From: Heteronotia binoei
Taxonomy: Eukaryota
Direction: 5' to 3'
Length of the DNA stretch: 64,000 nucleotides
Assembly: GCF_032191835.1 (NCBI RefSeq)
Contig: NC_083237.1
Coordinates: forward strand, 19,902,001-19,966,000
Shown here: piece by piece, positions 12,445 to 61,205 of the stretch
How positions within the stretch are numbered: position 1 is the first letter of the stretch
How the letters are laid out: each line of letters starts with the position of its first letter
Translations under genes and position numbers: made by a program
The notes under the pieces: model-generated
Told to the model about the DNA's origin: nothing
Database searches by the model: none
What the model saw: the letters and a program-made list of their open reading frames with translations, nothing else

Positions 12445-12891
12445 TCATCCACTCATAGTAAGGACTTCATCTAGGTGCACGGGCAAGCTGTTTTCATCGC
12501 AGTGAACGATCAGGCGCCTGGTGCTGAGGGTGGCGTAGTAGATGCACTCCCGAGCCCGGGTCACCAACCCCAGCCTGCAGATGGTGATGGGGTAGTATAT
12601 TTTGCTCTGACGCTTCCCGGTGCCTTTGTAGGGATTCCCGCCAGCCCCACACACGTCCTGGAGGTGTGCCTCAGAGGCGTGGATGAAAACGTTGAATGGC
12701 TTGCATGACTGGAAGAGGCTCCTGTAATTCATCTGAACTTCGCAGTATTCGGCGTTCTCGATGTTCGTTTTGGGATTGTCGTGGTGCTGCCTCAGGAACA
12801 TCTGGTACTTCTCGTTGTAGTGGGCAGTGGCGCCCACCAGCAGGTAGGTGGCGGCCGCAAGGTAAAGGGGCATCCTCTTCCAAGTCCACAT
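12445..12891 (-). CDS. RNase A superfamily protein 'RNase-a' (148 aa, secreted), catalytic triad intact
   Basis: Signal peptide; FLRQH (His12), CKPFNVF (Lys41), PVHLD (His119/Asp121); 6 Cys. accATG just after acceptor ctgcag| at 12898; the ORF track's GTG start is the exon boundary. AATAAA at 12399-12404. Confidence 0.95.
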   Translation of the reverse strand: MWTWKRMPLYLAAATYLLVGATAHYNEKYQMFLRQHHDNPKTNIENAEYCEVQMNYRSLFQSCKPFNVFIHASEAHLQDVCGAGGNPYKGTGKRQSKIYYPITICRLGLVTRARECIYYATLSTRRLIVHCDENSLPVHLDEVLTMSG

Positions 12892-13006
12892 GGTCACCTG
12901 CAGTTCAAGGAAGGGACAGTGACCTTGGTCCTACGTCCCAGCAAGGAACTGATACCCAAAATAGGCCATCAGAGAGGCCCAGCAGCCTTTTAAATACTGT
13001 TTTCAG

Positions 13007-13188
13007 CAGGGCTTTTTTTGTAGCAGGAACTCCTTTGCATATTAGGCCACACCTCCCCAATGTAGCCAATCCTCCTGGAGCTTACAATAGGCTCTGTATT
13101 AAGAGCCCTGTGAGCTCCAAGAAGATGGGCTACGTCAGGGGTGTCTGGCCTGATATGTGAAGGAGTTCCTGCTACAAAAAAAGCCCTG
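13007..13188. mobile_element. Palindromic hAT MITE (182 bp, CAGGGCTTTTT termini) in the RNase-a intron
   Basis: Perfect 8-bp TSD GTTTTCAG. Related copies at 23553-24083 (with a nested MITE), 31605-31803, 50922-51140, 59845-60010 and 61407-61582. Confidence 0.9.
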
Positions 13189-14104
13189 GTTTTCAGTATT
13201 TTGATTTTCACTATTGTATTCCGGACCAACATCTGCATACCCAGAGGAAGGGCTACTGAGGTCCAGGTCTTCTGACCACACACCACCCCTGCTTCCCACT
13301 ATCCCTGCCTCCAGCCTCTTGCTTGCAAGCACTCTGATGCCCACACTGTTACCAGCATCATCAGGTGAGGGACATGCGGGCACTGCAGGCCTCTATGACT
13401 GCAGCAGTTGAGAGGGCCTATGAAGGGGTGGGGAAAGAGTGAACAAGCATGTGGGTCAGTGGCTGGGAAGAGAGGCCTGACAGTAGGCAGAGGAGGCTAT
13501 GGGCAAGGGGTGGCCAAACTGGCTCAGGAGCCACATGTGGCTCTTTCACACATATTGTGTGGTTCTAGAAGCCATCACCGCCCTGCCTGCTGGCTTGGAG
13601 AAGGTGTTTTTTCCTCTTTAAATCACTTCTTCAAGCTAAGCCAGCTGCAGGCTTGGAGAATGCTTTTAAAGTTGCTTTCTTTCTACCTCTCCCTCCCCAT
13701 CTATCTTCCTTCCTCCCTCCCTCCCTTTTCCTCCTTCCCTCCCTCCCTCCCATAAACACCTGGCATTTATCCTGTGTGGTTCTTATGTTAAGCAAATTTG
13801 GCCACCCCTGTCTGGGCACTCTGCTCAAGCCCTCCCTCACCAAAACCCCCCAACAACCTGGAACTGACCCTGATTGTATTGACTGCTGGGGATCAATATT
13901 CACTCTGAGCTGCAGAGTCTTGTGAGCAAAAATTCTACTTTGTGAGCTAGTGGCATTATAATTGTGAGCCACTGCATAAATTAGTTTGCTCTGGGACCAT
14001 TTTTCCTGAGCTAAGACAAAAATATGTGAGCCAGGGGCTAAAAAAACCCGGTGAGCTAGCTTACACTAACTCAGCTTAGAGGGAACGCTGCTGGGGGTGC
14101 AGAA

Positions 14105-14275
14105 TGGTATAATATCGCCTCATCCTGTCAGATTTCGGAAGCTAAGCAGGGTCGGTACTTGGATGGGAGACCACCAAGGAAGGCTCTGTCCAGGAAGGCA
14201 GTCCCCTCTGATTCCCCCTTCCTTGGAAAGCCCCTTTCTGAGGGCGTCATAAGCCAACTGCAACTTCACAGCACA
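14105..14275 (+). mobile_element. 5S rRNA-derived SINE (other copies at about 17230-17285, 45880-46000, 52650-52772, 60440-60620)
   Basis: CGGAAGCTAAGCAGGGTCGG...TACTTGGATGGGAGACC from 5S rRNA with internal deletion, followed by a non-5S body. Confidence 0.75.
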
Positions 14276-14460
14276 TAGATACATACATAACGATAGCCAC
14301 AGATATTGACTGCGGGCTTTTCTGTAGATCTCTGTATTATTCGGGGCTTGCGGGAAAACCAAATAGGCAAAGCTTCAAACCATCACAGTCAAATGGTCCA
14401 AATTCCATTTGGAGCCTAATAAAAGGAAATCAGCATCGTCGCCTTTTTTTTTTTTTTTAC

Positions 14461-14551
14461 CTGAATCTGGTGCTGGATGCGGATGTCCAAGTGCTGTTGC
14501 AGATTTCGTCCAGGAAGCTTCACAGCATCAGGTTCCCTCGAAGTATATATA
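14461..14551 (-). promoter_or_regulatory. Predicted TATA box and non-coding exon 1 of RNase-a
   Basis: TATATATA at 14544-14551, then donor CAG|GTAAAA at 14460 about 85 nt downstream; fits the canonical RNase A gene layout (non-coding exon, intron, single coding exon). Confidence 0.6.
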
Positions 14552-15081
14552 CCGAGAGAGTGTGTCCTGGCAAGAGAACACCCAAGGCAATTGAATAGGA
14601 TGTGGGGATGACAGGAACAAAAAGCCCCAACTGCACCTAGAACAGAACACTCTTTCGCCTGAGGTTGTGAGGTGTTTTCTCCTGGCAGGGACCTCAACTG
14701 CTGTGTGACAGGCCACGCTTTCCCTGAGGAGACTTTTTGGTTGTTCTTTCAGGAAGGCGGCCATGCCATGGTAGCAGTCAGTCACACATTACACAGTATA
14801 CAGGCAGGCAGATAAGAACTGTCACCGCTATCAGAAGATGTCTGAGAGACTTGGGTTACAGGAGCGTGTGGTTAGGACCTGCAGAGTGGGCTCATCTGTT
14901 TATCTGAGATTATTCTTTCAAAGCATAAAAGGGCGTTCATTCTAGAGCAGGGGTGGCCAAACTGGCTCGGGAGCCGCATGTGGCTATTTCACACATACTG
15001 TGTGGATCTCGAAGCCCCCACTACCCTATTGGCTGGCTTGGAGAAGACATTTCTCTCTTTTATATCACTTCTGTTCTTTAG

Positions 15082-15360
15082 GAGAGCCAGTTTGGTGTAG
15101 TGGTGAAGTGTGCGGACTCTTATCTGGGAGAACCGGGTTTGATTCCCCACTCCTCCACTTGCACCTGCTGGAATGGCCTTGGGTTAACCATCGCTCTCAC
15201 AGGAGTTGTCCTTGAAAGGGCAGCTGCTGTGAGAGCCCTCTCAGCCCCACCCACCTCACAGGGTGTCTGTTGTGGGGGAGGAAGGGAAAGGAGATTGTGA
15301 GCCGCTCTGAGACTCTTCGGAGTGGAGGGCGGGATATAAATCCAATATCTTCTTCTTCTC
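15082..15360 (+). mobile_element. tRNA-derived Sauria-type SINE nested in a MITE
   Basis: Full copy with (TTC)n tail interrupting a CAGGGGTGGCCAA MITE. Confidence 0.85.
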
Positions 15361-17080: not shown

Positions 17081-17224
17081 NNNNNNNNNNNNNNNNNNNN
17101 NNNNNNNNNNNNNNNNNNNNNNNNNNNNNNNNNNNNNNNNNNNNNNNNNNNNNNNNNNNNNNNNNNNNNNNNNNNNNNNNNNNNNNNNNNNNNNNNNNNN
17201 NNNNNNNNNNNNNNNNNNNNNNNN
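17081..17224. other. Assembly gap
   Basis: 144 N. Confidence 1.
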
Positions 17225-18031: not shown

Positions 18032-20199
18032 CTCAGCTAGCACCACCACATCCCTGACCAGAACTTTCCTGCCTGGCTCTTCTATTATTAGCATTTTTTA
18101 AAAAAAATAAAAATAAAAATGATAGAGATCTCTATATCCTTTACTGTCTACTTTAATCCATGCCAGCTTGTAATGCTAAGGATAACTCTTTCTCAACCCT
18201 GACACATGAGAAACTTTCTACCAGGAGTTTGTTTGGGATAGAAGAAGCTGGAAAATGCAGGCAACAGAACTGCTGTAAGCAGTGACTTTCTTTCAGGATG
18301 GACCTCCCAGTGGGGCCTGGAGATCTCTCAGGATAACAGCTGATCTCCAGACTACAAAGATTGGTTCCCCTGAAGAAAATGGCTGCTTTGGGGGGTGGAC
18401 TGTATGGCATTATACCCCCGCTGAAGTCACCCGTCTTCCCAAACCCTGCCCTCCCCAGTCTCCACCCCCAAATCTCCAGGAATTTCCCAACCCAGACTTG
18501 GCAACCGTAACTCAGCACGCATTCCCTCCTCCTGTTCAGTGTACACCAGGCTTTTGTTTGGGGTTTCAAAAAGAGTTTGGTCTTCCTGTGAACACTTGGA
18601 ACAAATCCACATGACTACAAAGCCAGCCTCCACCAGAATTTTCAAATAGTACCTTGTGGAACAGGGAAGATGGCATGATTTAAATGATGCACTTACCGCA
18701 GAGGGTTTTCTCTGCTCATTTGACATATTTGTTTATCTGTAAGCATTACTACATGCGCTGAAGAATCCCAGGACTGGATCTACATTTTGGGGGGGGGGGG
18801 GAGAGGGGGCAAAATTAAAAAATAAAGCCACCTTGTGGGCCCATTCTATCTTATGGGCCCATAGAATAGAATAGACTTCACACCCAGTTTGGCACACGCA
18901 CCCCTCCGCTGGTGCCTGGGGCAAGTGTCCCCTCCACCCCACCCTAGATCCGGCCACGAAGAATCCACTTCCAAATTTCTGTGATTGATGGGACTTTCTT
19001 AGTCTGTGGCATTTTTAATGACTGTGTTAATGCTTACAGCAAAGGCGGGTTTTGGAATCCACAGTCCCTTGTGTTCTGATTTCTAACTGCCTGAAGGAAA
19101 GGAGACCATCTAGCAATCTGCGTTTCTCTGGTTCTCCTTCAAAGTACTGACTGGATACTTCTACAACTTCGTTTAGAAGCTGACAATTAATCATGGGATA
19201 TAAAATTGCTTGTGCTCAGAGTGGAGGATGAATCACAATAGATTTTTAAAAAACCCTTTAAGACAGGCAGTGCATGTTATCATTTGCAGTTATTAGTACT
19301 GGCAGCCAGTATTTTCCCAACTTCGCCGGGTCAGGCAGCTAGCCACCTTCCTCTCTAACTCAGATCCATGCAATGGTCACTTTGAGATTGGATTACTGCA
19401 ACTTGTTCTACATAAGGTAGAGTTGCCAGGTTTGACTCAAGAAATATCTGGGAACTTTGGGGGTGGAGTCAGGAGCAAGGGTGTGAAAAGCATGATTGAA
19501 CTCAGAAGGAGGTTCTGGCCATCACATTTAAAAGGACCACATGCCTGATATATGCCTTCCCTCCGTTTGAAAATAATGAAGGATAGGGGCACCTTCTTTT
19601 GGGGCCCATAGTATTGGACCCCCTGGTCCAATCCTTTTGAAACTTGGAGTGCGTTTTGAGGAGAGGTATTGGATGCTATGCTGAAAATTTAGTGTACCTC
19701 AAAAACAACCCCCTCCCAGAGCCCCAGATACCCATGGATCAATTTCCCACTATACCCAATGGGAATCAGTTCTCTTAGGGAATAATGGAGTGCCCTGCAG
19801 CCGTTTCCCTCCCCGCCTTTCTGATAACCCTGAAGCAGGGGGAAGGCTTTCAGACCAGGGATCCCCTGGTCCCAACGGGGGATTGGCAACCCTAAACTAT
19901 GGCTTGGGAAATCCCTGGAGATATGGGGCCAGACCCTGAGGGGGGCAGACCCTGTTGGGGGGGGGGGCTGGAGCTCAGCAGGGATGGGATGTTATAAAGA
20001 GTCCACCCTCTGAAGCTGCCTTTTCCTCCAGAGGAACTGATGTCTGTAGTCTCTCTGGAGATCACTTGTAATTTTGTAAAAACTCCAGAACCTTCCTGGA
20101 GGTTGGCAACCATAGATCAATGATCTACAATTTGCTCCTCTCATATCCATAATTTTAAATTTAATTATGCCCCTTAACTAGGATCTCACCCTCTTTAGT

Positions 20200-23039: not shown

Positions 23040-23483
23040 CTACATGAAATTGGTCTCTTCAAAAAGGTCAGGCCACCCCTTTTTGTCACAGGTAATCATG
23101 ATGAATCTCCTTCCCCTGTGGAAATCGTAGAAGCACCGGTTAGGTGCCGTGCTCTGCAGAAAGCAAGTGGTGACGGGAACCTCTACCTTGCTGATTCGCA
23201 AGTTCCGGCGGTAGTAGGTCCCCCCTCTCCAGTTGCAGATGTTATTCATGTCATCCCTGGAGATGTGGACGAAGCTGTTGGTCTGCTTGCAAGGAGTTGT
23301 CATCAATCTCTGTCTCATCATCGTGTTGCAGTACTCTGGTCCCGCATTGGTCTGGGGGAAGTCGATGTGTTCCCTCACGAACTTCCAATAGTGAGGAGTC
23401 TGGGAGGAGACGGAGGTCACAGCCAGAAAGGAAACCAGTAAGACCAGGACCAGCGCTTTGCTCCCTTTCAGCATGAGTGTCAT
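23040..23483 (-). CDS. RNase A superfamily protein 'RNase-b' (147 aa), lacks catalytic His119, predicted pseudoenzyme
   Basis: Signal peptide, mature N-terminal Gln, FVREH, CKQTNSF, 6 Cys; C-terminal PDLFEE replaces PVHF(D/E). Acceptor ttgcag| at 23502. No stop or frameshift. Confidence 0.93.
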   Translation of the reverse strand: MTLMLKGSKALVLVLLVSFLAVTSVSSQTPHYWKFVREHIDFPQTNAGPEYCNTMMRQRLMTTPCKQTNSFVHISRDDMNNICNWRGGTYYRRNLRISKVEVPVTTCFLQSTAPNRCFYDFHRGRRFIMITCDKKGWPDLFEETNFM

Positions 23484-26083
23484 CGCTGAATTCAGAGGAA
23501 TCTGCAACAGTAGCAAGGAGTAAAAGGGTTAAAGCAGGCTGATACTGCTTCTCAGGGCTTTTTTTGTAGCAGGAACACCTGTGTATATAAGGCCACACAC
23601 CCCTGAGGCAGAGCCGGATTAACAATTAGGCCATATAGGCACTGGTCTAAGATCTCATGCCTTTAGGGGCCCCGGACCGGCTCCCCCCTAGTTTCCCCCC
23701 GTTTTGCAGCCCTCCCAGCCTGCATGTGCTGCTCTTTACCCAACTTGTCTGGGGCAGCTGCTGCTGGCATTGTTGTCAAGTTTGCCTCTCCCCCGCAGCT
23801 TAGTAAAAGGGACTTTCGAGAAGGTGCCTGCAGGCTGCAGCGGGGGTCATGGGTAATGGAGTGGGCACTCAGACTCTGAGATAATTTGCAAGGCCCCCCC
23901 GCAAGATTTTGACTACCTAGGGACCTCCACGGGGTTTGATCTGGCACTGTCCTGATGTAGCCAATCCTCCAAGAGCTTACAGGGCTCTTCTTACAGGGCC
24001 TACTGTAAGCTCCAGGAGGATTGGCTACATCAGGGGTGTGTGACTTAAGATGCAAAGGAGATCCTGCTACAAAAAAAGCCCTGATGCTTTTCCGCCCCCC
24101 CCCCGCCATCCCTGCAAGCTGAACACAGCCGTTCATCTCAAGTCCTCAGTTTTATTGATTCATTGATTATCTTCCTTTCTCACTGGGGCTGGGAAAGTGA
24201 AAAATGACATAGGATTGGGCCAGGGCTTTTTCCTGTGGAACTGTGCTGGGACAAAGTTCCATAGAGGGCTGACCCATGGGTTTGTGGCACCCTAGGAAGG
24301 CACCCCCCTGCTGCCTCCCCGCCAGTGCCGCCCAAAGGTGCCCCCCTGTGTTGCCTTGCACCCCTAATGTGGTGCTGCAACCCCCCTTCCGTGGCAAGGC
24401 AGTGGTGGCACCCCCTTCCCTTCCCATCCCTCCCCTCCGCCCGCGTTCACAGTCCAACGGGTGAAACTTATCTTTAGAACGACTGGGCTGAAATGAAGGC
24501 TTGGCTCCCCCCTCCTTTCTGGAACCGGAAGGGAGGGGGGAGCCAAGCCTTCATTTCAGCCAGGTCGTTCTAAAGATAAGTTTCACTGGCGTTGGGCTGT
24601 GAGTGCGGGGGCGGAGAGGGTTAGGGCTAGGAAAGGGAAAAGGGGAGGAACGGGAAGGGGTTGCCGCCGCTGCCTCGCCACCCGCTGTGATTGTGGCAGT
24701 GGGGCAGAGAAGGGAAGGGAAAGGGGGAGGGAAGGGGATGCCGCTGCTGCCTCGCTGCTCACTGTGATCGCGGTGGCGGATCAGGGAAGGGGATGCAGTC
24801 TCTGCCTCGCCGCCGGCTGTGATCGCAGCAGGAAAGAGAAGGGAAAGGAAGGGCGGCGGGGGGAGGTGAAGGGAAGGGGCAGGCGAGGCAGCAGCGGTGG
24901 CAGGCGGCGGTAGTGGGCGGCAGAGGCAGGCAAACTAGGTGCTTGCCTGGGGCACCGGGAGGGGGTGGGGAGCCCAATTTGGCACCCCCACCCTCCCAGA
25001 GCCCTAGGCAACCGCCTAGTTTGCTAGTGGGCAAGCCGGCCCTGGTTCCAAAACCTCTTTGTGGAAACAAAATTCTCAAAATATGTCTAAAGGTTCATAT
25101 GGGGCACTGGGGGAGCATGACACCACTTGTGATGTTACAAAAATATTAAAATAAAAATAATTTTTAAAAAAGATTTACATGAGGAGATGCTCAGTACCAG
25201 TTGTGGGCGAGGAGGGAAACAGCCAGACTGCGCAGGGGACTGAAGTTTAGAAGCCGCTTTAAAGCAGAGGCATGCCCATAGCTCATGAAAATAACATCGT
25301 TTCAAAGAATCCCATGTGTTTCTCCTTCATTTCCCTCTTGTGAGTTCCAGCACCTCTTTTTCCAGAAAAAAAGCCCTGGTTTTGAATTGCAGAACCAACC
25401 AGAAGTCTAGAAAACAGAAATGAAGCAAAGCCCCCCAGAGGGTGTGGCCTAATATGCAAATGAATTCCTGCTACAAAAATAAAAGCCCTGGTTACCTCAG
25501 CTGTTCCGGTATCACTGGGTTGTACCCTGCCACCTCAGTCAACTAAACACTGAGCCTTTTCTTCATTCCATGGAGCCATCTGTTAACCTGCTAAACCTGT
25601 TATTTCCAGGCGTTGGGCTGTGAGTGCGGGGGCGGAGAGGGTTAGGGTTAGGAAAGGAAAAAGGGGAGGAACGGGAAGGGGTCTTTTGAATCTTACTCTG
25701 GGAGTGATAGGCCATATTACAGACAGCTGTTACAGACAGCTGCCCATCTCAAGCTGCTTTCAGAAAAAGAAAGAACTTGGGGCACCATGTTCATAAATTT
25801 TGTGGGATTTATTAATCGATAACCTCTAATGAGGATTTTCTCTTTTAATCACATCCAGAATTTCCAGACCATACCCCAGCACAGAAAAATACATTGATAG
25901 CACGTAGCTTAGCCTTATCTAAAATATCTTTATATTGAAGCATTAATTTGGCTTAAAACAGCAGAAAGCATAAGCAGCGTGGAGTGTGAAAAGCAACATA
26001 AGAACACAGCAAGCGGGATATGAAAGGGTAGTGGAGCACATTCAAAGTTGGCCCAAAGGTGGCTTGCCAGGAAAAGGCCTTAC

Positions 26084-27632: not shown

Positions 27633-28589
27633 GTCTAGTGCCATGTTAGGGTTGCCAGCTCTGGGTTGAAAAATACCTGGAGATTTTGTGGGTGGAATCT
27701 GAGGAGGGTGAGGTTTGGGGAAGGGAGGGACTTCAGTGGTGTATAACAACATAGACCCCGCCTTCCAAAGCAGCCATTTTCTCCAGGTGAACTGTTCTCT
27801 GTTTTCTGGAGATCAGTTGTAATCCCAGGAGATCTCCAGCTACCACCTGGAGGATGGCAAACCTTTGCCATTGCATCCACTCTTCAAAGCAGCCATTTTC
27901 TCCAAGGGGACTGAGTTCTGTAGTCTGGAGATCAGTTGTAATGCTGGGAGATCTCCAGGCCCCACCTGGATTTTGGCAGCTAGAATGGCCCCTCACACTT
28001 TCCTCCCTCAGATAGATTTTCCCCTCTGAAATTTTGTTTCCTTCTGTGACTAAGTTGCCCCAAATAATGTGGTTTTCTTCTTTATCTTTAAAAGGCCTTC
28101 TGTCCCACCGTGACATAGAGATATAATTTGGCTTTTAGCCCAGCCCCGGAATCTGAGGGAAGAATAAGGAGCCCTCTTGGGTTAAACCTCTTCAAATGGC
28201 ACTTGAGATGATGTAAAAGTCAAACAGGGAAAACAAATATTTAAAAGACAGGGGAAGGTCATGTGTAATCAGGAGTTGTTAACTTTGAGACAAAAATCAG
28301 TGGCTGTACAGACTGTAATTCTTTATATAGGCAAATGAGAGTTATTGAAGATTATCGTCCTGGTTACTGAGATCTAGATACTGAGAGGCTCCCCCCCTCC
28401 CCAGTTTTTCCAAACACTACAATGTGTCAGGGCTGGCCTGGAGCAGGTGGGATGGATGGGGAGGGGACGGGGCGGGGCGGTAGGATGAAGAGGAGAAGCA
28501 ACAGGGAGGGGGTGGGATGGGTGAGCAGAGGAAGTGAAGTGATGAGGAGGGGGCGAAATGATGAAGAGAATCAATGGGGAAGAGGCGGG

Positions 28590-28735
28590 ATGTGCGAGCG
28601 GGGGAAGAGAAGCCATGGGGAGTTGGTGGGGCAGGTGGGAGGCGAGCGGGGGAAGAGAAGCCATGGGGAGTTGGCGGGGCGGGTGGGAGGCGAGCGGGGG
28701 AAGAGAAGCAATGGGGAGTCGGTGGGGTGGGCAAG
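28590..28735. repeat. Purine-rich minisatellite, about 45-bp unit x3
   Basis: GCGAGCGGGGGAAGAGAAGCCATGGGGAGTTGG.GGGGC.GGTGGGAG repeated. Confidence 0.85.
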
Positions 28736-30373
28736 CTACAGAGGAGGGGAAGGGACGTGTGGGCGGAGGAAGAGGCAAACTAGCCATTTGTCTAGGGCAT
28801 GGGGAGGGCCAAATTTGAGGCCCCCACCCTGCCGGCACCCTAGGCAAATGCCTTATTTGCCTAGTGGGTGGGAAAGCCCTGTAATGTCTCTTAAAAGAGT
28901 TAGCTATTTCTCCTCTTATTTCTTTGAGTCTGGTACCTTCTTTCAGTACCTAATTCCCTCTCTTCCTTCTAATCCTTAGTTTCTATCTAGCTCTTGAGGT
29001 GTCTCAAGCAGTTTCCTTTCACAACAGACCAGGGATCTCCTCCTCCCAAAGATGACTCTCCCTGTTTAACTGGGCCTGGTTGCTTCTTGTTTTCCTAGAA
29101 GATAAATCCTCTTTCCTTTGGCCAATCCTCTCAGTACCCAACAACCTTGCCAAAATCTCATTCCCAGCTCTCGTGTCTGTGTAAACTGCTTTCAGCACAG
29201 GCTGAGACTCACACTCTTTCAGTTCTTCTACTGAGTTCTTTCTCAGAGCAGATTTTTAAAAGTTAAGGTATAGAATTGTCTTTTTTCCTCTCAAATCAGG
29301 AATCTGTCAGAATGCCCATTCTCCCTCAGCAGGGCCAGATCTAGGGGGGGGGGGGGGGGCAGAGGGGGGTGCTTGCCCTGGGCGCCACCAGAGGGGGGGC
29401 ACCAAATTGGGTATGGAGTCCATTCTATTCTATGGGCTCATAAGGTAGAATGGGCCCATAAAGGGGCACCATTTTTTAATTTTGCCCCCCCCTCAAAAAA
29501 ACATGTAGATGCAGTCCTGTCCCTCAGCACCCAGTTTATAAAATTTCTGTGGATCAGAATGGTTGGAGTAGCTCTCCCTTCTTGTGGAGATTTAACTCCT
29601 CACCTCCCAGTCTTCTGACAGTGCAGCATTTTGAAGCCTGTTTTAAGGGCTGTCCATCACAGCAGCCTTAGATTTGGAGCACAAAGTCAAGCTCTTAATC
29701 CCACATTCAGATCTTGCACACATGCCTTCTGGGGGCAGGGCCAGAGAGTACAATCCCTCCACTCCCTCTATGCACACAGAAGGTGGGTGTTTTGTAAAAA
29801 AACCGAACAGGGCATGATGTAAGGACATGTTGAGTAAGCAAAGGGAATCTCTTGAGCAATGAAGACTCCAGAGCCTGGGGCTTACAGAAGGATTTGTGTC
29901 CATCTGTCGAAGAGAGAACAATTGTGACTTCACACGGTCAAGGACAAAGAGGGCAGCCAGCTGTTTTGGCAGGTCCTCTGGCTGTCCCTTTTTAATATCA
30001 GCTTGATCAGCAAGCAAACAACAGGTGACTTGCATGTCATGGAAAGCTTGACCTGCCCCTCACAGCATGTTCAATTTGTATTAAGAGAACAGAACATTCC
30101 CCCCATCCACCTACCCAACTGACCACATGAGGGGTTGATACAAGGGTATACATGGTTCTAGGAGGATACAAGGGTATACACGGGTTTAGGAAGAGATCCA
30201 TGTACACACCATTATACATCAGTGTGTGATGATACCTGACTTCTCTGTTGTATTACTTTCACTAACACTTTCCCAGTAAGTGTATGCTTGGCAAAATAAG
30301 CACTTGTATGATATATGTAAGTAATTTAGTTGTCGTGAGTTGCCCTGAACCCTATGTGCATGGAAATGTGGGA

Positions 30374-30648
30374 NNNNNNNNNNNNNNNNNNNNNNNNNNN
30401 NNNNNNNNNNNNNNNNNNNNNNNNNNNNNNNNNNNNNNNNNNNNNNNNNNNNNNNNNNNNNNNNNNNNNNNNNNNNNNNNNNNNNNNNNNNNNNNNNNNN
30501 NNNNNNNNNNNNNNNNNNNNNNNNNNNNNNNNNNNNNNNNNNNNNNNNNNNNNNNNNNNNNNNNNNNNNNNNNNNNNNNNNNNNNNNNNNNNNNNNNNNN
30601 NNNNNNNNNNNNNNNNNNNNNNNNNNNNNNNNNNNNNNNNNNNNNNNN
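30374..30648. other. Assembly gap
   Basis: 275 N. Confidence 1.
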
Positions 30649-44400: not shown

Positions 44401-45119
44401 CCTGTTGGAAGGTTTTCGAGTTTGGAGGCGATGGAGTTCCTGACCATGAAGCCAACGCCTGAAAGGCGGCTCTCAGCCTTTGACTTACCCGACCAGTAGA
44501 GGGTATAGCCAGCACCGTGTTCTTGAAGACTACCTTCCTCAGGGAAACGGACCTCACTGAGAGCTGCTATGTCGATATTCAACCTGAGAAGTTCGTGGGC
44601 AACTAGAGCAGAGCGTCGTTCAGGGCGACCACTGCCTACTGTGTCAAGCATGGTTCTGATGTTCCAACACGCAAGCTTTAGTCTTTGCACACTTTGTGAG
44701 GCAGGTGCATGCCTTTTCTTTGTTGTTATTTTTCGACCGCAAGTAAGGATGCCCGTTGACCGCGGCTAGCCAACTGGGGTGGGGGAGACGAGCTTTGTTT
44801 AGGCCACCTTTTCTAGGCCCCTCTCCGTGTGGAGCAAGCAGTGCTGTCCCTAGATAAGGCTGCTTGGTCGTTCAGGGTGCTGCCGAAAGATGCTTTCGTC
44901 TCCGGGTTAGCATCAGGCGACCAATATCCTGAACCGCCTACATGCAGGATCGGGACTGCGGCTTCCAGTGGCACCTTCCACCTGCCGTTTCGCCCCTTGC
45001 CTATCGCTGCAGGACTTGATGCGTTGTGAGTTGTGTGTGTGGATATGCCCTTCAGGCCTGCGCAGAGGAATTTTTTAGGTGAAGCGCAGTGTGCGCGGTA
45101 CTGGCTCCACCCTTTCACC
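41440..45119 (-). mobile_element. Full-length RTE-clade LINE (about 3.7 kb)
   Basis: Single long ORF, about 350-bp structured 5' UTR, short 3' tail ...TTCGCGAAGCCAAGCC; inserted at the 3' tail of an L2 fragment. No clear TSD seen. Confidence 0.93.
41466..44690 (-). CDS. RTE polyprotein: AP endonuclease, reverse transcriptase, C-terminal C2H2 finger (1074 aa, uninterrupted)
   Basis: WNIRT, ILGDFNAR, TDHRLV (endonuclease); YRGITLL, QCGFR, DLTKAFD, GVKQGCVLAPTLF, LFADD (RT); CSRCGRTCLSHIGLVSHQRAC. Confidence 0.97.
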   Translation of the reverse strand: MQRLKLACWNIRTMLDTVGSGRPERRSALVAHELLRLNIDIAALSEVRFPEEGSLQEHGAGYTLYWSGKSKAESRLSGVGFMVRNSIASKLENLPTGHSDRIMSMRLPLQNKQHATLFSVYAPTLQADPAEKNKFYADLRNLVRKTPTEDKVIILGDFNARVGKDSEAWKGVLGKHGIGNCNDNGRLLLEFCMEHQLTITNTIFQQKNSLKTTWMHPRSKHWHLIDYILVRQRDLRDVLHTRVMPSAECHTDHRLVRCNLRLHFKPTPRRGGIPRRKFQVGSLQSAEVKAAFQAKLQSRIEDLSCPTDPSPEALWEHLKTTVLQISEEVLGFSTRKNKDWFDENNQEIQELLAKKRSAYQAHLAQHSCPGKKATFRAACSNLQRKLRDIQNEWWTKLAERTQLCADTGDLRGFYEALKAVYGPSYQAQSPLHSADGQVLLTDKASILNRWSEYFQVLFSANRVVQDSAIHLTPLQPVKTELDEIPTLEETVKAIKQLKSGKAAGVDGIPPEIWKHGGTVLHSSLHKVLVTCWEQGKLPQDFRDAIIITLYKNKGEKSDCSNYRGITLLSIAGKILARILLNRLVPTIAEELLPESQCGFRANRSTTDMVFVLRQLQEKCREQNKGLYVTFVDLTKAFDTVSRKGLWQILERLGCPPRFLSMIIQLHEDQRGQVRHCNDLSEPFPIGTGVKQGCVLAPTLFTIFFSMMLQRAAVDLDEDDGVYIRYRTDGSLFNLRRLKAHSKTMEKLIRELLFADDAALVSHSVSALQHMTSCFAEAAKLFGLEVSLKKTEVLHQPAPQEVYHPPCITVGESVLKTVQQFSYLGCIISSDAKIDKEIDNRLAKANRAFGRLHKRVWSNKHLKKGTKINVYKAVVMTTLIYGSESWVLYRHHLRLLERFHQRCLRTILNIHWSDFVTNTEVLKRAEVTSIEALLLKTQLRWAGHISRMENHRLPKIALYGELSTGHRNRGAPKKRYKDSLKKSLSTCHINHHQWSDLASDRKAWRHTIHQAVSSFENTRIAGLEDKRRLRKNRTATAPTPNQTFPCSRCGRTCLSHIGLVSHQRACSKRGLLHPS

Positions 45120-46285: not shown

Positions 46286-47441
46286 AGGAACATAAGAACA
46301 TAAGAGAAGCCATGTTGGATCAGGCCAGTGGCCCATCCAGTCCAACACTCTGTGTCACACAGTGGCCAAAATTTTTTATTTATACACACACACACACACA
46401 CACACATATATACACACACACTGTGGCTAATAGCCACTGATGGACCTCTGCTCCATATTTTTATCTAACCCCCTCTTGAAGCTGGCTATGCTTGTAGCCG
46501 CCACCACCTCCTGTGGCAGTGAATTTCACATGTTAATCACCCTTTGGGTGAAGAAGTACCTCCTTTTATCTGTTCTAACCCGACTGCTCAGCAATTTCAT
46601 TGAATGCCCACGAGTTCTTGTATTGTGAGAAAGCGAGAAAAGTTCTTCTTTTCCATCCCATGCATTATTTTGTAAACCTCTTATCATGTCACCCCGCAGT
46701 CGACGTTTCTCCAAGCTAAAGAGCCCCAAGCGTTTCAACCTTTCTTCATAGGGAAAGTGTTCCAAACCTTTAATCATTCTAGTTGCCCTTTTCTGCACTT
46801 TTTCCAATGCTATGAAATTCTTTTTGAAGTGCGGCGACCAGAATTGCACACAGTATTCCAAATGAGACCGCACCATCGATTTATACAGGGGCATTACGAT
46901 ACTGGCTGATTGTTTTCATTTCCCTTCCTAATAATTCCCATCATGGTGTTGGCCTTTTTTATTGCAATTGCACACTGTCTTGACATTTTCAGTGAGTTAT
47001 CTACCACAACCCCAAGATCTCTCTCTTGGTCAGTCTCTGCCAGTTCACACCCCATCAACTTGTATTTGTAGCTGGGATTCTTGGCCCCAATGTGCATTAC
47101 TTTGCACTTGGCCACATTGAACCTCATCTGCCACGTTGACGCCCACTCACCCAGCCTCAACAGATCCCTTTGGAGTTCCTCATAATCCTCTCTGGTTCTC
47201 ACCACCCTGAACAATTTAGTGTCATCTGCAAACTTGGCCACTTCACTGCTTACTCTCAACTCCAAATCATTTATGAACAAGTTAAAGAGCATGGGGCGCA
47301 GTACTGAGCCCTGCGGCACTCCACTGCTTACCGTCCTCCACTGCGAAGACTGCCCATTTATACTCACTCTCTGCTTCCTATTAATTAGCCAGTTTTTGAT
47401 CCACAAGAGGACCTGTCCTTTTACTCCATGACTCTCGAGCT
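46286..47441 (-). mobile_element. 5'-truncated CR1 LINE (3' part of RT plus tail)
   Basis: SGVPQGSVL, LFNLFINDL, KFADDTKL, HLEYCVQFWSP; (CATAAGAA)n tail at about 46286-46305. Confidence 0.92.
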
Positions 47442-49225
47442 GGAGAATAATGGAGAATTGATCTGCGAGTATCTGGGGCTCTTGTAAGGCTGTTTTTTGA
47501 GATAGAAGCACCACATTTTCAGTATAGCATCCAGTGCCTCTCCCCAAAATACCCCACAAGTTTCACGAAGATTGGACCAGGAGGTCCAATTCTACAAGCC
47601 CCCAAAGAAGGTGACCCTATCCTTCATTATTTCCTATGGAAAGGAGGCATTTAAAAAGGTGTGTGGTCCCTTTAAATGTGATGGCCAGAACTCCCTTCAG
47701 AGTTCAATTATGATTGTCACACCCTTGCTCCTGGCTCCACCCCCAATGTCTCCTGGCTCCACCCCCAATGTCTCCTGGCTCCACCCCCAAAGTCCCCAGA
47801 TATTTCTTGAATTGAACTTGGCAACCCTACTGAGCTAAGCCAGAAATGTGTGAGCTGGAGGCTAAAAATCTGTGAGCTAGCTCATGCTAACTCAGCTTAG
47901 AGGGAACACTGTTGTGGGGTTAGCCTCCCTCCCAAATCATAGATGCAGGGTCTGTTTCCTTAAGCCACCAGTGTCACATGGTCACTGTGAGGTTGCTGGG
48001 CAACCCTCAACCAGCTTTGTAAAGGATTCCAAACCTCTGTTGATGATGATGTGTGTGTGTGGGGTGGGGGGGCATGAGAGAGATAATGAATCAGTCAGTT
48101 GTTTCATAGAGCAGGCGAATAAAGTGTACATCAACCGAGTGGCTGGCAAAAGAGACAGGTCTAAAAGGTAAAAGAAGGGAAGGCAAAAATGGAGGAGGAA
48201 GAAAAAGGGTTTAAATGGAAAGCTGGGAAGGCAAAATAGAAAGAGATATATGGATGGATGAGAGAGTGGGAGACAGGTGCTTTCAAGGGGAGAAACAGAA
48301 AAAAACTATAGAATTAAAGGGGCAGGGTTGGAGTATAGGTCCAACCCTGTAGTACAATGTAGTACAAAATGATCCAGGGATCATTTTGTAGAAAAAGAGG
48401 TGCCTGAGCTCATTAGCACAACCCATTTGCATGTGCTGCACATCCCTGACATCACCGGAAGGTGTACGAAATTATATCAGCTCAGCATCTACCTTAAAAT
48501 GCTTCTGGAATGATAATTGTCATCACAAAACCACAGTGTGGCCCCAGTGGCACGATGAAGATTTCCATCTGTCAGCTTCATATGTTTTGGTTATTTTCCC
48601 CATTTTTGTGTGGGGAAAAATATTAGAAAATTTGTCAACTCCTAGAGTTCAGCAAAAATCTCACAGGAGGTTTCAATGGTGGAGCCCAGAAGCAAGTATT
48701 TTTTGGGGGGGAGGGGTAAGAAAGAGCACAATAAAATTTAGAGGCGTGTTATTTTGAGAGTATTATTTTGTGTACACAGACTGGTTCAGAGAGAGGTCTG
48801 TCTTCAGGACTGATCGTTGAGTAATACAAATGGCACATTCCACAGGGATAACTGTCAGGGACAGTCAGAATTACTATCAAAATTAAACAGAATTGCAGTG
48901 ACACTTCCCAGACTTAGTCCAGCAGGAGGTTTTGTGAGTCAGATTTCCCTTCCTCGCTTTTTCTTAATTCTGCTTCTAGCAGGGCTTGCCCTGGACTATC
49001 TGGCACCCTAGGCAAGGCTACATTCTGCCCCTCCAGCCTCCGCAACAGTGGAGGTTGGTGGACAATGATGTCACCAAGTCATGTGGCGGCACCCGTTTCG
49101 GTGCCCTCAGAAGGCCAGTGTCCTAGGCCAGGGGTTCCCATCCCCCGGTCCATGGACCGGTACTGTTAGCAACCCGTGAGTTGTATAGTTATTTCATTAT
49201 GTATTACAATGTAGTAATAATAACA

Positions 49226-49850: not shown

Positions 49851-50157
49851 CTCTAATGAATCCCCCACTGCTCAGTACCCCCTTGTGGCCATATAAGGCA
49901 CTAACAAGCATTGGCATTGAAATTCCCAAGCCTTGTTGTTGTAATGTTTAGCCATTTCCATAAGTTTTAACTTTTAGTGTCACTTTGCAATCTTTAACGA
50001 TCCAATCTTAGAATGTCCGAATGCTAGTAGACATTTGCAATTATTAGCTCCAGGGGTTTTCATAAAGAATATTTTGAAATCTAACCGTTTGTCGAATTTA
50101 GGAGGCAAGAATGTATCCCCACTTGGTTTTAACAGGAACCTGCCAGTAGCTGATACA

Positions 50158-50652
50158 ATGAGAGCTTTTCAGAGACATGCTCTGATTCTCCTGGCTTTCC
50201 AAGTGATGGCATCTGCACTGGAAGACTCTCCCGAGAAAACAAATGGATTTCTACTCTTCTTGAGGCAACACTTTATTCCTGACTATGTTCCCCTGGAAGA
50301 TGTGGACTGTAACCACCTAATGAGTGGTAGTATCCTTACCACCGGGAAATGCAAGAAAGCAAATACCTACATTGTGTCCTTCCCGGATCTTCTCCAGGCT
50401 GTTTGCAATTCCAAAGGAAAGCCCTACAACAACCTCCGGAAAAGCCTGGACCGCTTCGACCTCATTACCTGCACATTGGAAGAAGACATAGCCGAAGAGC
50501 TCTGTAACTACAAGCTGCGTCGCTTCTCTGACTCCATCGTTGTCGGCTGTGATAGATACGGGTATCCTGTTCATCTTGAAGAAAGTTATTTTCAAACAGC
50601 GATGGAAAAGGAGGCCAAAGCCAGCAGGACTTGGTACAACTATTTTTTGTAG
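50158..50652 (+). CDS. RNase A superfamily protein 'RNase-d' (164 aa), acidic, C-terminally extended, opposite orientation
   Basis: Acceptor ttttaacag| at 50135; MRAFQ... signal peptide; FLRQH, CKKANTY, PVHLEE; 6 Cys; AATAAA at 50760-50765. The ORF track's upstream 41 aa are intronic. Confidence 0.93.
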   Translation: MRAFQRHALILLAFQVMASALEDSPEKTNGFLLFLRQHFIPDYVPLEDVDCNHLMSGSILTTGKCKKANTYIVSFPDLLQAVCNSKGKPYNNLRKSLDRFDLITCTLEEDIAEELCNYKLRRFSDSIVVGCDRYGYPVHLEESYFQTAMEKEAKASRTWYNYFL

Positions 50653-51199
50653 TGTTGGACTAATTTTTTTTTTAAATGGCTTGGGTTTTTTTCCAGTTCT
50701 GACCAGGCTTCTTGATACAACGTCAGTACATTCAAATGGAAAAAAAGAAAGAAATGCAGAATAAAGGCAAAGTAGCCGTGTTGGAAAAGGAGAAACGAGG
50801 ATTGAAAAGATCATTTGCACTTTGAAATGTCAGTAAAATGACTTGGTATCCCAAGTGTTCTCTCTCTTTATTTGTTGATAAGTGTAACCATTTTTTTTTG
50901 GGGGGGGAATATTCTTTGTTAGCAGGGCTTTTTTTGTAGCAGGAACTCCTTTGCATATTAGGCCACACACTCCTGATGTAGCCAATCCTCCAAGAGCTTG
51001 GAATTCTAGCAGCGGCTCCTTTGCATATTAGGCCACACACCCCTGATATAGCCAATCCTCCAAGAGCTTACAGTAGGCCCTGTAAGAAGAGCCCTGTAAG
51101 CTCTTGGTGGATTGGCCACATAAGGGGTGTGTGGCCTAATATTAGGGGTCCCAACCCTCCCGCCCTAGCGGGGGACCCCAGGTTTTCCAGCCTCTTCCC

Positions 51200-51830
51200 C
51201 CGCTATCCCAAAAAAACGGAAGCGGGGGAAGAAACGGCGCGAAGGAGCGTGGTGAGCCGCCCCTTCTCCGCTTCACCATGGCTGCTCCTCCGAGATGGGA
51301 TCAGGCTGGGCCCATCTCAAAGGAGCAGCTGGGAGGGGGCGGCAGCGCAGCGGCATCGCCCGCGCCGCCTCTGAAGTGGAGTGGGGGGGCGACCCGGGGG
51401 GGGGGCGGGCCAGGAGCGTGGCGGGGGGTGGGGTGGGAGAGAGAGTGTGCCGCTCCAGGCCGCGCGCGGAAGTGCCTCCCCTTCCTGCTCGGTCTCCAGG
51501 GAAACGCCAAGCAGAGGCTCGCTCGCCCGCCACCCGGCAGCTGCTGGCTTGGCCTCCTGGGGGGTGGGAGCGCGGCTCCCAGGGAGGGCAGGTGGGGGTG
51601 GCTCCTTGCCTGCCCCCCAGGTCCACTTGGGGCGAGGGGGGAGCCGCTGGTGGGCGGGCTGCTGCCATGGCTGGTCCTGCCGCCGCCACTATCCGGATCG
51701 GGGACCAGCTCATCTTGGAGGAAGACTATGATGAGACCTATATCCCCAGCGAGCAAGGTATCCCCTCCTTGCCCTGCCCGGGGGGTGGGGGTCACCCGAG
51801 GGGGGTCTGGGCCCTCCTCTTCCCGCTGTA
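51200..51830 (+). promoter_or_regulatory. CpG island with RFX X-box and ETS site (CEP164-type promoter)
   Basis: Very GC/CpG-rich; GTCTCCAGGGAAAC at 51492-51505 fits the RFX X-box consensus of ciliary genes; CGGAAGT at about 51467. Confidence 0.65.
51667..51757 (+). CDS. CEP164: CEP164 first coding exon ([31 protein letters not shown]); no downstream exon found in the window
   Basis: Near-identical to the recalled human N-terminus [28 protein letters not shown]; gccATGG Kozak; phase-1 donor G|GTATCC; upstream acceptor ccccccag at about 51619. Confidence 0.9.
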
Positions 51831-57846: not shown

Positions 57847-58110
57847 GAGAGCCAGTTTGGTGTAGTGGTTAAGTGTGCGGACTCTTATCTGGGAGAACCG
57901 GGTTTGATTCCCCACTCCTCCACTTGCACCTGCTAGCATGGCCTTGGGGCAGCCATAGCTCTGGCAGAAGTTGTCCTTGAAAGGGCAGCTGCTGTGAGAG
58001 CCCTCTCCAGCCCCACCCACCTCATAGGGTGTCTGTTGTGGGGGAGGAAGGTAAAGGAGATTGTGAGTCTCTTCGTAGTGGAGGGCAGGATATAGATCCA
58101 ATATCTTCAA
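57847..58110 (+). mobile_element. tRNA-derived Sauria-type SINE
   Basis: Full copy. Confidence 0.85.
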
Positions 58111-60776
58111 TATTTTCTTTCACAACACATCTCAGTTGAAGGGGGGAATCACAAGAGCAAGGGAGCTGTGAACATTTTCAGGGTCAGGCTCTCTAAAATG
58201 TTTGATAGTTGCGAATTGATGGAGGTTGAAAAGAGCTTTAAGCTGGGAAAAGTCACATGGGATCAGCCATCACAATCAACAGAAGACCTCTGTGCCTGAA
58301 ATTTGTTTTGGATTTTATGACGGCAGAATTGCCAAATCATACCAACCAGACCAAACTAGTGGATCTAATTTCATGTTACAGACTGAGCAAGGTACAGGGG
58401 TCGTTCTGCAGAAAAATAGGTGATGCAGCTCATCCAGGGATTGTTATGCAGCTGCACTTACTACTCAATGGACAAGGTGGGGAGGAGGAGGGGGAACCAT
58501 CAGAAAGGTTCAGGAGCTGTGCTCCTGTGAGCTCCTGCTGTGAGGTATAAACTCAAAGAACCCTTGGATGAGAAGCCTGAATGGGTCATGGATTCAAATT
58601 ATGGCTGGCCCTGAAAATAAGGGAAGGAAAGCTTGTGGGAGTAAAGAATCCGGGAGTGGGGACACTGGCCCAAGTGCTGCGGGGGGGGGGGGGGGGGACA
58701 CACCAAATGTCATGTTGATGTCAAACCTGCACAAAAGCCAAATCTTTGCATCAAAATAAGATGCAGTAGTATGAAATAGCCATTCTGGTGCTTATAGCAA
58801 GCTTTAGTTGCATGACAGTGCATTGTCATAAGATCCAGCTCTTGTACTGAAAGAAACGTTTTTTTTTCTTCCAAGTTGACACTTTCTCTCTATTTGTTGG
58901 GGGAGCTGTGGATGGAATATTTAAATACGCTATTCAATTAGCTTAATTGATTTTGAAACCTCGATCGACAAAACAGTTGCCTCCACTGAATGAACCAACG
59001 TATTTTAGAATATATTCATTTAACAATCATTTTTAAAATGTTGATTTTTTTTTTTTAGGAGGCAAGGATCCTATCAGAAGAGGCATTCTAGACGGAGAGG
59101 CATTCTATCTATGTATTTTCTGCAATGCTTTTCTCTTTTGTAGTTTAAATCAATAAAACTTTTAAAAAGCCAGAAGAGGCATTCTATTTTTTCATCCGTC
59201 TTTTCCTCTTCGCATGTATGCCACCCACGTGTAACTCTTGAAACAAAGGCTTTTCTTCAAAACAATGGTTTAATTGAGATGCGGATTCATGCACATTCAT
59301 TCATTATTTAAAAACTCATTATATTATCTGAAATTTCTTCGACGTTTCTTGTTTTGTCATTTGGTGACCCAAAAGGTGAGCCAGATCACAGATACATCCA
59401 AGAAGATAGAAAAGATCTACTGAAGAGTAGAAAATTTCCAATTTATCAGAGTTTAAAAAAAATGAGGAGAGTGATCAAACTGGAGACCGTACACTGAGAA
59501 ACAGTCTCCCTTCTCCCTCAGTTTCCTTAGATATATAGGTATATACAGTAGCTAAATGGAAATCGGCAGTACCACATCTGGCCACTGGGGGCAGCAGTCT
59601 GATCTAGAAAGGGCGCCTAATTATAAAAAGTCTTGGAAAGATTCAAAAACTACAAACTTATTTTGACTTAACAACACTTTAACTGTTATGCTTTCCCCTG
59701 GAAAATAATGGGAACTGTAGTTTGAGGAAGGTGCTAAGAATTAAGGATGCTTAGTCCTTTTACCTCACAGAGTTACAGTTCCTTGAGAAGAAAGAAATAC
59801 TGTTACTTATAGGCACAGTGCAAGGATGCTGAAGATCAGGGGTTTTTTTTCTGCAGGAGCCCACAGAAGCAGTGCTCCACGTGGGCTGGCTTGGGCTCTG
59901 GCTGGCTCGACCTGCCATTGGGCAGCCGCAGGCTCCCAGGTCAGGCGGTGTGACCTAATATGCAAATGAGCTCCTGCTGGGCTTTTTCCACACACAAAAA
60001 AGGCACTGCTGAAGATCAAATGAAAATAAGAGGCAGGAAGGTTGTTACAGAGTTGCCTGTTTCCTGCCACAGGCTGTAACTACAGCAGGAATTTTTTGTA
60101 ATGGTTGTTGGGCCAACAGTGTGACATAACTTCCAAAGGACCTCAGTCCTTTCCAGGAAAACCAGAAACTCTATGGTTTTGGCCAGAGTGATTCCTAGAG
60201 AGGTGTGACATCACTTTCATATATTCCTGGAAGTGACATCATACCATCGCTGACAGCTGCCTGCCTATGTCTTTGCCCCTCCACTTGCCGCTTGTTGCCA
60301 GGCACAATCTAGGTTATTATAAGTGATGACCACTAGAGAGTAGTACAGTCAAAATTCAAGCTTAAGGAGTAGGAGGAAAGGTTAGAACGGCTGATGGGAA
60401 AAGAGAGGTGATTATAACTAGGTGTATAGCCTCAGCACTGTGACCTGGATGGCCCAGTTGAGACCAATTTCTTCAAATCTTGCAAGCTAAGCTGGTTAGT
60501 ACCTGGATTGGATATGACCAAGGAAGCCCAGGGTTGCTCTGCAGAGGCAGGCAAAGGCAAAACACATCTGAACACCTTGAAAACCCTATGGGGTTGCCAT
60601 AAGTTGGCTGAGAGTTGATGGCTCTTTCCACCACCATAGCAATAGCAAATTCTAGATGATACATTAATGGGGAAGTGGAATATGTAATCTTTCTGAAGTT
60701 TAAAGTGGCTACATGGCATCTATTCCAGACCACACATGCTGACACCACTTCCAAAGACTCTTCTCTACTTGGAGAT

Positions 60777-61205
60777 CTAAATAATTCTGTGGAAGTGTAC
60801 TGGCTGCGACGCATTATTGCAGAGCACTTCGATACGTCTGTAGTCGGTCCAGCCCCTGTAGTTACAGGGGGGCCTCATGCGACGTCCCCCAGTGGCTTCA
60901 CAGTTAGTGAGATTAAAGGAGGCATGGCTATCAGTGTAGTTGCCAACACGGGTCCCTGCGGTGGTGCAGATGGCATCTACGTCGTTTGCAGGGTTATGGA
61001 TGAAAGAGTTGAGATATTTGCAGATGCGGCGGGTCATCCCTCTCCTCTGCATCATGAGGTTGCAATAGAGCCGGTCAGTCAGCTGGGGACTGGTCTTTGG
61101 GTAGTCCATATGTTTCCTCTGGAAGTCCTGGTAGGTAGGTTGTGGGGAGGCTGGCAAGGGCCCCAGCAGGATCAACAGGAGGAGCAGCATTGGACAGGCT
61201 GACAT
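60777..61205 (-). CDS. RNase A superfamily protein 'RNase-e' (142 aa), cationic, closest paralogue of RNase-c
   Basis: Acceptor cccccag| at 61224; signal peptide near-identical to RNase-c (LLLLL.LLGPLPAS); FQRKH, CKYLNSF, PVHF; 6 mature Cys. Confidence 0.96.
   Translation of the reverse strand: MSACPMLLLLLILLGPLPASPQPTYQDFQRKHMDYPKTSPQLTDRLYCNLMMQRRGMTRRICKYLNSFIHNPANDVDAICTTAGTRVGNYTDSHASFNLTNCEATGGRRMRPPCNYRGWTDYRRIEVLCNNASQPVHFHRII

Follow-up and report, generated by a model that had tools for sequence, protein, structure and literature searches.

All members of the RNase A family of secreted ribonucleases (RNases) share three core disulphide bonds (26-84, 40-95 and 58-110) and a secretory leader. 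The human RNASE cluster at 14q11.2 includes the gene order RNASE3, RNASE2, METTL17, SLC39A2, NDRG2, TPPP2, RNASE7, RNASE8 (PMC10340279), and the mammalian paralogues of this cluster arose from a mammal-specific expansion (PMC3845642). The RNase A repertoire of reptiles has been portrayed as small and simple, with 3-5 genes (PMC3845642). In the literature we searched, the split into catalytic and non-catalytic members is presented as a mammalian development, and no paper there describes RNase A clusters of squamates or their synteny with METTL17. Here we describe five RNase A genes, RNase a to RNase e, that lie upstream of METTL17 in a stretch of 64,000 nucleotides from the gecko Heteronotia binoei (GCA_032191835.1, CM063339.1:19,902,001-19,966,000; hereafter, the window). 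We consider it probable that these genes form a mixed-age tandem cluster of secreted RNase A genes at an ancient METTL17-linked locus.

The window contains five complete RNase A open reading frames (ORFs; Table 1), each predicted to be a single exon. All five match the Pfam profile RnaseA (PF00074) with E values of 1.5e-16 to 9e-32 and scores of 61-110 bits, compared with a curated cut-off of 23.1 bits, and the matches run from profile positions 1-6 to positions 118-121. Each precursor, counted from the first sensible ATG, begins with a hydrophobic leader that can be read from the sequence, and each mature protein contains exactly six cysteine residues at aligned invariant columns. The three core disulphides and the secretory leader of the family are thereby predicted for all five proteins. 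The ORFs are uninterrupted, and an AG acceptor is located 2-9 nucleotides 5' of each ATG, as would fit the usual family structure of one coding exon that follows an intron in the 5' untranslated region. The genes are arranged in tandem and are 26-53% identical to one another. Using all five proteins as tblastn queries, we found no sixth RNase copy or fragment above chance in the window. The Pfam matches, leaders, cysteine counts and tblastn search all agree with a preliminary description of the window, made from the sequence alone, which had reported five intact, secreted, six-cysteine RNase A genes upstream of METTL17.

Residue numbers follow an alignment of c with bovine RNase A, made with HMMER, and alignments of the family. 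The catalytic triad (His12, Lys41, His119) is complete in a, c, d and e; RNase b has Leu119. The signature around Lys41, CKxxNTF, is matched exactly by c (CKPSNTF) and deviates in a (CKPFNVF), b (CKQTNSF), d (CKKANTY) and e (CKYLNSF). The five proteins belong to the RNase A fold family, and their status as enzymes is predicted to differ from gene to gene. The preliminary description was also right in its residue calls (Thr45Val in a, His119Leu in b, Asp121Lys in c, Asp121His in e), in the acidity and tail of d, in the predicted glycosylation of e, and in its general statement that the paralogues differ in active-site and charge make-up. The pairwise ratio of non-synonymous to synonymous substitution rates (dN/dS, Nei-Gojobori) ranges from 0.21 to 0.50 across the five genes, with bootstrap upper bounds below 1 in all comparisons save the short one between the c genes of Heteronotia and Gekko kuhli.

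Relatives of the five genes were collected with a word index and with a profile search over 1.84 billion representatives, which returned 672 family members. With the word index, relatives of c (64-84% identity) were found in all squamate groups as well as in turtles. The relatives it found of the other genes came from geckos: Gekko kuhli, Gekko japonicus and Euleptes for a; G. japonicus for b; Paroedura, Eublepharis and G. kuhli for d; and G. kuhli, G. japonicus and Eublepharis for e. The 30 named sequences among the best 150 of the profile search added a Paroedura a gene, a b gene from the agamid Phrynocephalus, and a turtle cluster beside b. Orthologues in related geckos have been annotated automatically as 'ribonuclease-like' or 'angiogenin-like', and the H. 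binoei genes are new members of a known family.

The loci of these relatives have the following gene orders. Eublepharis and G. kuhli carry c, d and e on the minus, plus and minus strands, matching H. binoei, and G. japonicus has the order b, a, METTL17. In Phrynocephalus the order is c, b, METTL17, with b located 1.7 kb from METTL17 and a absent from the METTL17-upstream locus. The snake Candoia has c followed by b 9.9 kb downstream, with no RNase-like sequence in the 10 kb upstream of c, and in Hemicordylus c stands alone within 10 kb on either side. The turtle Emydura has a c-type group of three genes and, approximately 35 kb further on, a b-like RNase gene, an a-like RNase gene and METTL17, all in one orientation; Chelonia likewise has a b-like gene followed by an a-like gene. 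In Emydura, Phrynocephalus, G. japonicus and Heteronotia, RNase genes immediately precede METTL17 and share its orientation. The order c ... b (a) METTL17 is thus common to turtles, an agamid, a snake and four geckos, and the ancestral METTL17-anchored RNase locus proposed in the preliminary description holds. The gene orders support an age for the arrangement c ... b, a, METTL17 at least as great as that of the common ancestor of turtles and lizards.

The Emydura locus also contains a major histocompatibility complex class I gene (locus positions 668-3134), situated about 7 kb upstream of the b-like RNase gene, between the c-type group and the group of b-like gene, a-like gene and METTL17.

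A phylogenetic tree of 65-66 named domains (IQ-TREE, LG+C20 PMSF) tells the same story. RNase c grouped with its squamate relatives (support values 100/99) and squamate c with turtle c (99/97), and e was nested inside the gecko c clade (99/95). Support was 97/82 for squamate b, from geckos and Phrynocephalus, with the first turtle gene, 99/96 for squamate a with the other, METTL17-adjacent turtle gene, and 100/98 for the a and b groups with each other. Given that turtles have the order b-like, a-like, METTL17 and geckos the order b, a, METTL17, tree and gene order agree. With no more than moderate support, mammalian RNase 1/4 were placed on the side of c and angiogenin on that of a and b. RNases a, b and d share their side of the tree with the one mammalian angiogenin (ANG) sampled, but are not its sisters; the relevant forks have 84-85% support, and with this single ANG in the tree we found no one-to-one orthology of a, b or d with mammalian ANG.

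Taken together, these data suggest that the sauropsid ancestor of turtles and lizards would already have possessed a c-type gene and, next to METTL17, a b-type and an a-type gene, so that three of the five genes would predate the squamates. Geckos would later have added e, as a copy of c, and d, an inverted, angiogenin-like and fast-changing gene.

RNase a of Heteronotia has a valine at position 45, and Val or Ile is found at this position throughout the gecko a lineage. The residue at position 119 is more telling. His119 is missing in seven of the nine a-lineage sequences, including both turtle genes: Gln takes its place in G. japonicus (CAA), in the a-like genes of the two turtles (CAG in Emydura) and in two further sequences, and Leu does so in Euleptes and Paroedura. 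Only the a genes of Heteronotia and G. kuhli have His119 (CAC). Lys41 has been lost as well in Euleptes a and in one further sequence. With b as the outgroup and the tree topology of the a lineage, parsimony by hand requires five changes for an early loss of His119 and six for repeated losses; by this preference of one step, the His119 of Heteronotia a may be a reversion. The dN/dS of Heteronotia a compared with the Gln-bearing gene of G. japonicus is 0.29 (0.17-0.49), and the a lineage looks like an old, putatively non-catalytic lineage under purifying selection. The Thr45Val configuration singled out in the preliminary description is correct as a residue call, but the key feature of the lineage is the loss of His119 in the orthologues. 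More broadly, we suggest, with slightly more doubt than conviction, that a is a METTL17-adjacent sauropsid paralogue more than 250 million years old that lost His119 early (with Gln in both turtle suborders and several geckos), stayed under purifying selection and is an independent, non-mammalian counterpart of RNases 9-13, and that it is accompanied by a gecko-unique, acidic d whose conserved tail has an aromatic tip.

RNase b retains His12 and Lys41 and has the C-terminal sequence WPDLF, that is, Val118Asp and His119Leu (plus-strand positions 23064-23069; assembly sequence alone). The codons are GAC CTT in Heteronotia and GTC CAT in G. japonicus and Phrynocephalus, and the other genes of the b lineage, those of turtles included, keep W-P-V/M-H-F. 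The preliminary description had the substitution right, but the comparison indicates a change private to Heteronotia and not a feature of the lineage. The two differences are T-to-A and A-to-T changes at the second positions of adjacent codons, with the surrounding 24 nucleotides unchanged, and GTCCAT to GACCTT may have been one multi-nucleotide event. When polarised with an outgroup, the Heteronotia branch of b has 29 non-synonymous and 10 synonymous changes, close to the neutral expectation of approximately 3:1, and the G. japonicus branch has 20 and 13. These counts hint that b was relaxed after the loss of His119 in Heteronotia.

Could part of the cluster simply be decaying? On this explanation, Heteronotia b, and perhaps a, would be an unprocessed pseudogene in the making whose frame is open by chance. 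The loss of a catalytic histidine through two adjacent non-synonymous changes in a single species, and the near-neutral b branch, are what one would expect. In addition, the d gene of G. kuhli has lost 5 bp at the Pro-Val codons that precede His119 (locus positions 10455-10465), which together with the absence of a from Phrynocephalus indicates that members of the cluster can be lost. However, the ORF of b is complete and retains its six cysteines, His12 and Lys41, and its last eight codons, stop included, are identical in DNA sequence to those of G. japonicus. RNase b is transcribed, or at least present in RNA libraries: of the words sampled from b and its flanking sequence, 46-89% occur in the contigs of four RNA runs from two studies. 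The two b branches do not differ significantly (Fisher p = 0.31), and the dN/dS of a is low even though the G. japonicus orthologue lacks His119. We therefore regard decay as unlikely, though it is the most serious competitor of the mixed-age cluster.

RNase c is a conserved reptile 'ribonuclease-like' gene. It belongs to a c-type group that is monophyletic with squamate and turtle members and precedes b in Phrynocephalus, Candoia and Emydura. Its C-terminal sequence PVHFK places Lys121 where bovine RNase A numbering would have Asp121, and Lys121 is present in every squamate and turtle c orthologue. The Asp121Lys configuration that the preliminary description attributed to c is thus real, but it is the norm of the lineage. 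Reptile RNases seldom have Asp121, and the pancreatic RNase of the iguana has high activity (PMC6794472). RNase e has the sequence PVHFH, with His121, and the highest charge of the five proteins. Position 121 varies among the four species with e (His, His, Glu and Gln), and the NLT sequon is common to three of the four. RNase e is 53% identical to c and the flanking DNA of the two genes is also homologous, which, with its position in the tree, identifies e as a probable gecko-specific duplicate (in-paralogue) of c. The Heteronotia branches have 12 non-synonymous and 7 synonymous changes in c, and 22 and 14 in e.

RNase d stands apart. It retains the triad and has 22 extra C-terminal residues ending in WYNYFL; triad, acidity and tail (F...E.E...WY.YFL) are common to Heteronotia, Paroedura and Eublepharis. 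Its dN/dS is 0.35. The d branch is very long, with approximately 1.5 changes per column, and joins fish sequences with weak support (81/14), a grouping that we reject as long-branch attraction. Its best relatives of known structure are zebrafish RNase 5 and the mouse angiogenins. A position of d beside the a/b group costs only one unit of log-likelihood (lnL) and is allowed by the approximately unbiased (AU) test (p = 0.45); the test marginally rejects a placement within the c/e clade of squamates (p = 0.041). Among the relatives found, d is known only from geckos, and the AU tests narrow its possible placements. In G. kuhli, d also has a 5-bp insertion near the end of the tail (at about 10535) and an early stop in the assembly; this disruption is either a real loss or an assembly error.

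The preliminary description had interpreted the cluster differently, as an independent squamate radiation: all five genes would derive from one gene at the METTL17 locus and would then have split into catalytic and non-catalytic members. The tandem arrangement and low mutual identity of the genes would fit such a history, as would the word searches, in which the named relatives of a, d and e come from geckos only. However, forcing the five squamate groups into one clade worsened the lnL by 100 and was rejected (AU p = 3.4e-5). Turtle genes pair one-to-one with a, b and c, both in the tree and in their order relative to METTL17, and mammalian angiogenin and RNase 1/4 fall between the a/b and c sides, albeit with the moderate support already mentioned. 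A more restricted version, in which only a and b duplicated within squamates after the turtle split, was not rejected when the tree included one turtle a-like gene (AU p = 0.17), but was marginally rejected with two (AU p = 0.044). With three old genes, and with the two that are young or lineage-restricted found only in geckos, a squamate-wide radiation is rejected, and we consider it very improbable.

A similarly remote explanation is that mis-joins, collapsed copies or genes missing at gaps have falsified the gene count, the gene order or the b substitution: there are two runs of N within the cluster and the compared gecko loci end at the second, but both gaps are intergenic and lie clear of every ORF, the sequence on either side of the first is collinear with a G. 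japonicus contig (locus positions 14430-14771 and 14798-15150), order and orientation are reproduced in the independent assemblies of G. japonicus, G. kuhli and Eublepharis, and the 9-10 kb spacers between c and b in the agamid and the snake contain no further RNase.

Several points weigh against our account of a mixed-age cluster. From the 672 family representatives we examined the best 150, of which 30 were named, and the sampling was without mammalian RNases 9-13, crocodilians and tuatara; a d or e gene outside geckos, or a mammalian orthologue of a or d, could have been missed. On the question of how old a is (p = 0.044), and on the position of d, whose branch is very long, the AU tests are only marginal. 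The surplus of non-synonymous changes in Heteronotia b falls short of significance (Fisher p = 0.31). Signal peptides and glycosylation of the five genes are predicted from sequence, as are their functions, and the evidence for expression consists of b in the contigs of RNA runs.

What might the mixed-age cluster do? With His12, Lys41 and His119 in place, c, d and e would be expected to cleave RNA by the standard acid-base mechanism of RNase A. RNase c would probably serve as the general 'pancreatic-type' enzyme; e, strongly cationic and predicted to be glycosylated, is a probable candidate for host defence; and the conserved tail of d probably alters access of substrates or partners. The a lineage appears to have been without His119 since before, or soon after, the split of turtles and lizards, and would most likely act by binding and not by catalysis. 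RNase b would be a normal angiogenin-like enzyme elsewhere; in Heteronotia, with His119 lost and a near-neutral substitution ratio, it would either have lost catalysis and gained a new role or have begun to decay.

The locus reveals no new kind of system. What it does show is a micro-synteny conserved among sauropsids (c ... b, a, METTL17); one lineage in which the catalytic histidine has apparently been missing since roughly the time when turtles and lizards diverged; and gains and losses specific to single lineages, the gains being d and e, the losses a in the agamid, His119 of b in Heteronotia and, apparently, d in G. kuhli. It thereby offers natural pairs of catalytic and putatively non-catalytic RNases outside mammals for testing roles beyond the cutting of RNA. 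Two subjects should be of interest to specialists: the old a lineage, mostly devoid of His119, and d with its acidity and its tail.

Table 1. Features of the window and of a second RNase locus on the same chromosome. Positions are those of the window unless an accession is given; aa, amino acids; pI, isoelectric point; net, net charge of the mature protein.
Feature	Position	Strand	Remarks
RNase a	12445-12891	-	148-aa precursor; Pfam E 3.9e-23; mature pI ~8.3, net +2
RNase b	23040-23483	-	147-aa precursor; Pfam E 6.4e-24; mature pI ~9.2, net +6
RNase c	34855-35295	-	146-aa precursor; Pfam E 9e-32; mature pI ~9.2, net +6; one predicted sequon
RNase d	50158-50652	+	164-aa precursor; Pfam E 1.5e-16; mature pI ~5.4, net -4; inverted orientation
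RNase e	60777-61205	-	142-aa precursor; Pfam E 3.4e-26; mature pI ~9.5, net +8; three N-X-S/T sequons
METTL17, 5' part	968-6255	-	runs off the left end of the window; tblastx and human PDB match
METTL17 coding exons (approximate)	6147-5971, 5033-4864, 4227-4159, 2614-2519, 1290-1198, 1036-968	-	
METTL17 ORF	4816-5121	-	human METTL17 residues 72-117 (PDB match)
Assembly gap 1	17081-17224		run of N, a-b spacer
Assembly gap 2	30374-30648		run of N, b-c spacer
Proline-rich stretch	28374-28979	both	internally repetitive; overlapping ORFs; b-c spacer
Retrotransposon ORF	41466-44690	-	intact, 1074 aa; c-d spacer
Reverse transcriptase fragments	46526-47559		c-d spacer
GC-rich segment	50890-56424		~5.5 kb, between d and e
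CEP164 first coding exon	51667-51759	+	within the GC-rich segment; human CEP164 residues 7-32 (E 2e-9); GT donor next
Interspersed repeat copies	13014-13181, 23551-23598, 25442-25486, 50822-51038, 61400-61457, others		
156-aa angiogenin-like gene	CM063339.1:19,650,492-19,680,121, locus positions 2486-2956	-	RNase A
Multi-exon 'ribonuclease-like 3'	same CM063339.1:19,650,492-19,680,121 locus, RNase domain ~19268-19627		

The coding exons of METTL17 were mapped by tblastx against the Rsm22-domain genes of Phrynocephalus and Emydura. METTL17 shares its strand and direction of transcription with a, b, c and e, and about 6.2 kb separate the stop codon of a from the nearest METTL17 coding exon. H. 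binoei has two further RNase A genes 232-249 kb away, past METTL17 (Table 1), which brings the chromosome to at least seven, on both sides of METTL17.

The spacers between the RNase genes contain several other features. An intact ORF of a retrotransposon without long terminal repeats, with endonuclease and reverse transcriptase domains, and further reverse transcriptase fragments account for the length of the c-d spacer, which is approximately 15 kb in Heteronotia and approximately 5-6 kb in Eublepharis and G. kuhli. The GC-rich segment with the CEP164 exon is absent from the otherwise collinear d-e spacers of Eublepharis and G. kuhli, and there is no WW-like ORF on the plus strand between 51.8 and 64 kb of the window; the exon may mark the genuine start of CEP164, e then lying in an intron, or it may be a transposed 5' copy. 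One interspersed repeat, whose translation contains WPNMQRSSCYKK, recurs near the 5' side of several RNase genes and lengthens the raw ORF of e upstream of its true ATG. The proline-rich stretch between b and c is probably a tandem repeat.

How do the five genes compare with described systems? RNases c and e resemble the reptile pancreatic-type RNases (iguana RNase 1, turtle RNases, the 'ribonuclease-like' entries of NCBI and avian 'ribonuclease CL2-like'), with which they share the three disulphides, the full triad and a short L4 loop; their missing Asp121 is typical of reptile RNases (PMC6794472). RNase e differs from this group in being restricted to geckos, in its higher charge and in its three sequons. 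The best single-domain match of c among solved structures is green turtle egg-white RNase (2ZPO). This protein belongs to a turtle-specific paralogue group and not to the c orthologues, and it was discarded as a Lys121 structure for c, as it has Asp121. We also rejected the idea of a 'ribonuclease toxin', as proposed for Toxicofera: we found nothing to mark the five genes as toxins, and a comparative transcriptome preprint questions whether RNases of this kind are conserved components of venom (10.1101/006031).

RNases a, b and d are closer to angiogenin (RNase 5) and to the angiogenin-like proteins of fish and mouse. They score best against these among solved structures, zebrafish RNase 5 included, they have six cysteines like angiogenin, and they fall on the angiogenin side of the tree with moderate support. 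The C-terminal sequence of the b lineage, G-W-P-V-H-F-D/E-E-S, resembles the angiogenin motif. In contrast to angiogenins, the a lineage mostly lacks His119, as does b of Heteronotia, and unlike the basic angiogenins d is acidic and has its 22-residue tail.

The a lineage also invites comparison with mammalian RNases 9-13, which are METTL17-linked, secreted proteins of the RNase A fold that have been conserved without catalytic residues. Unlike these, the a lineage keeps His12 and usually Lys41, and the likeness would be functional, by analogy only. The preliminary description's parallel with the canonical and non-canonical RNases of mammals is a fair analogy in this sense, for the a lineage. 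In the tree, the gecko genes are not one-to-one orthologues of members of the human 14q11.2 cluster. The surroundings of the two clusters are nonetheless similar. As the preliminary description had stated, the human cluster abuts METTL17, RNASE2 being its neighbour (PMC10340279). The pair of RNase genes on the far side of METTL17 in H. binoei recalls human RNASE13/7/8 beyond TPPP2, and RNase genes flank METTL17 on both sides in the gecko as they do in humans.

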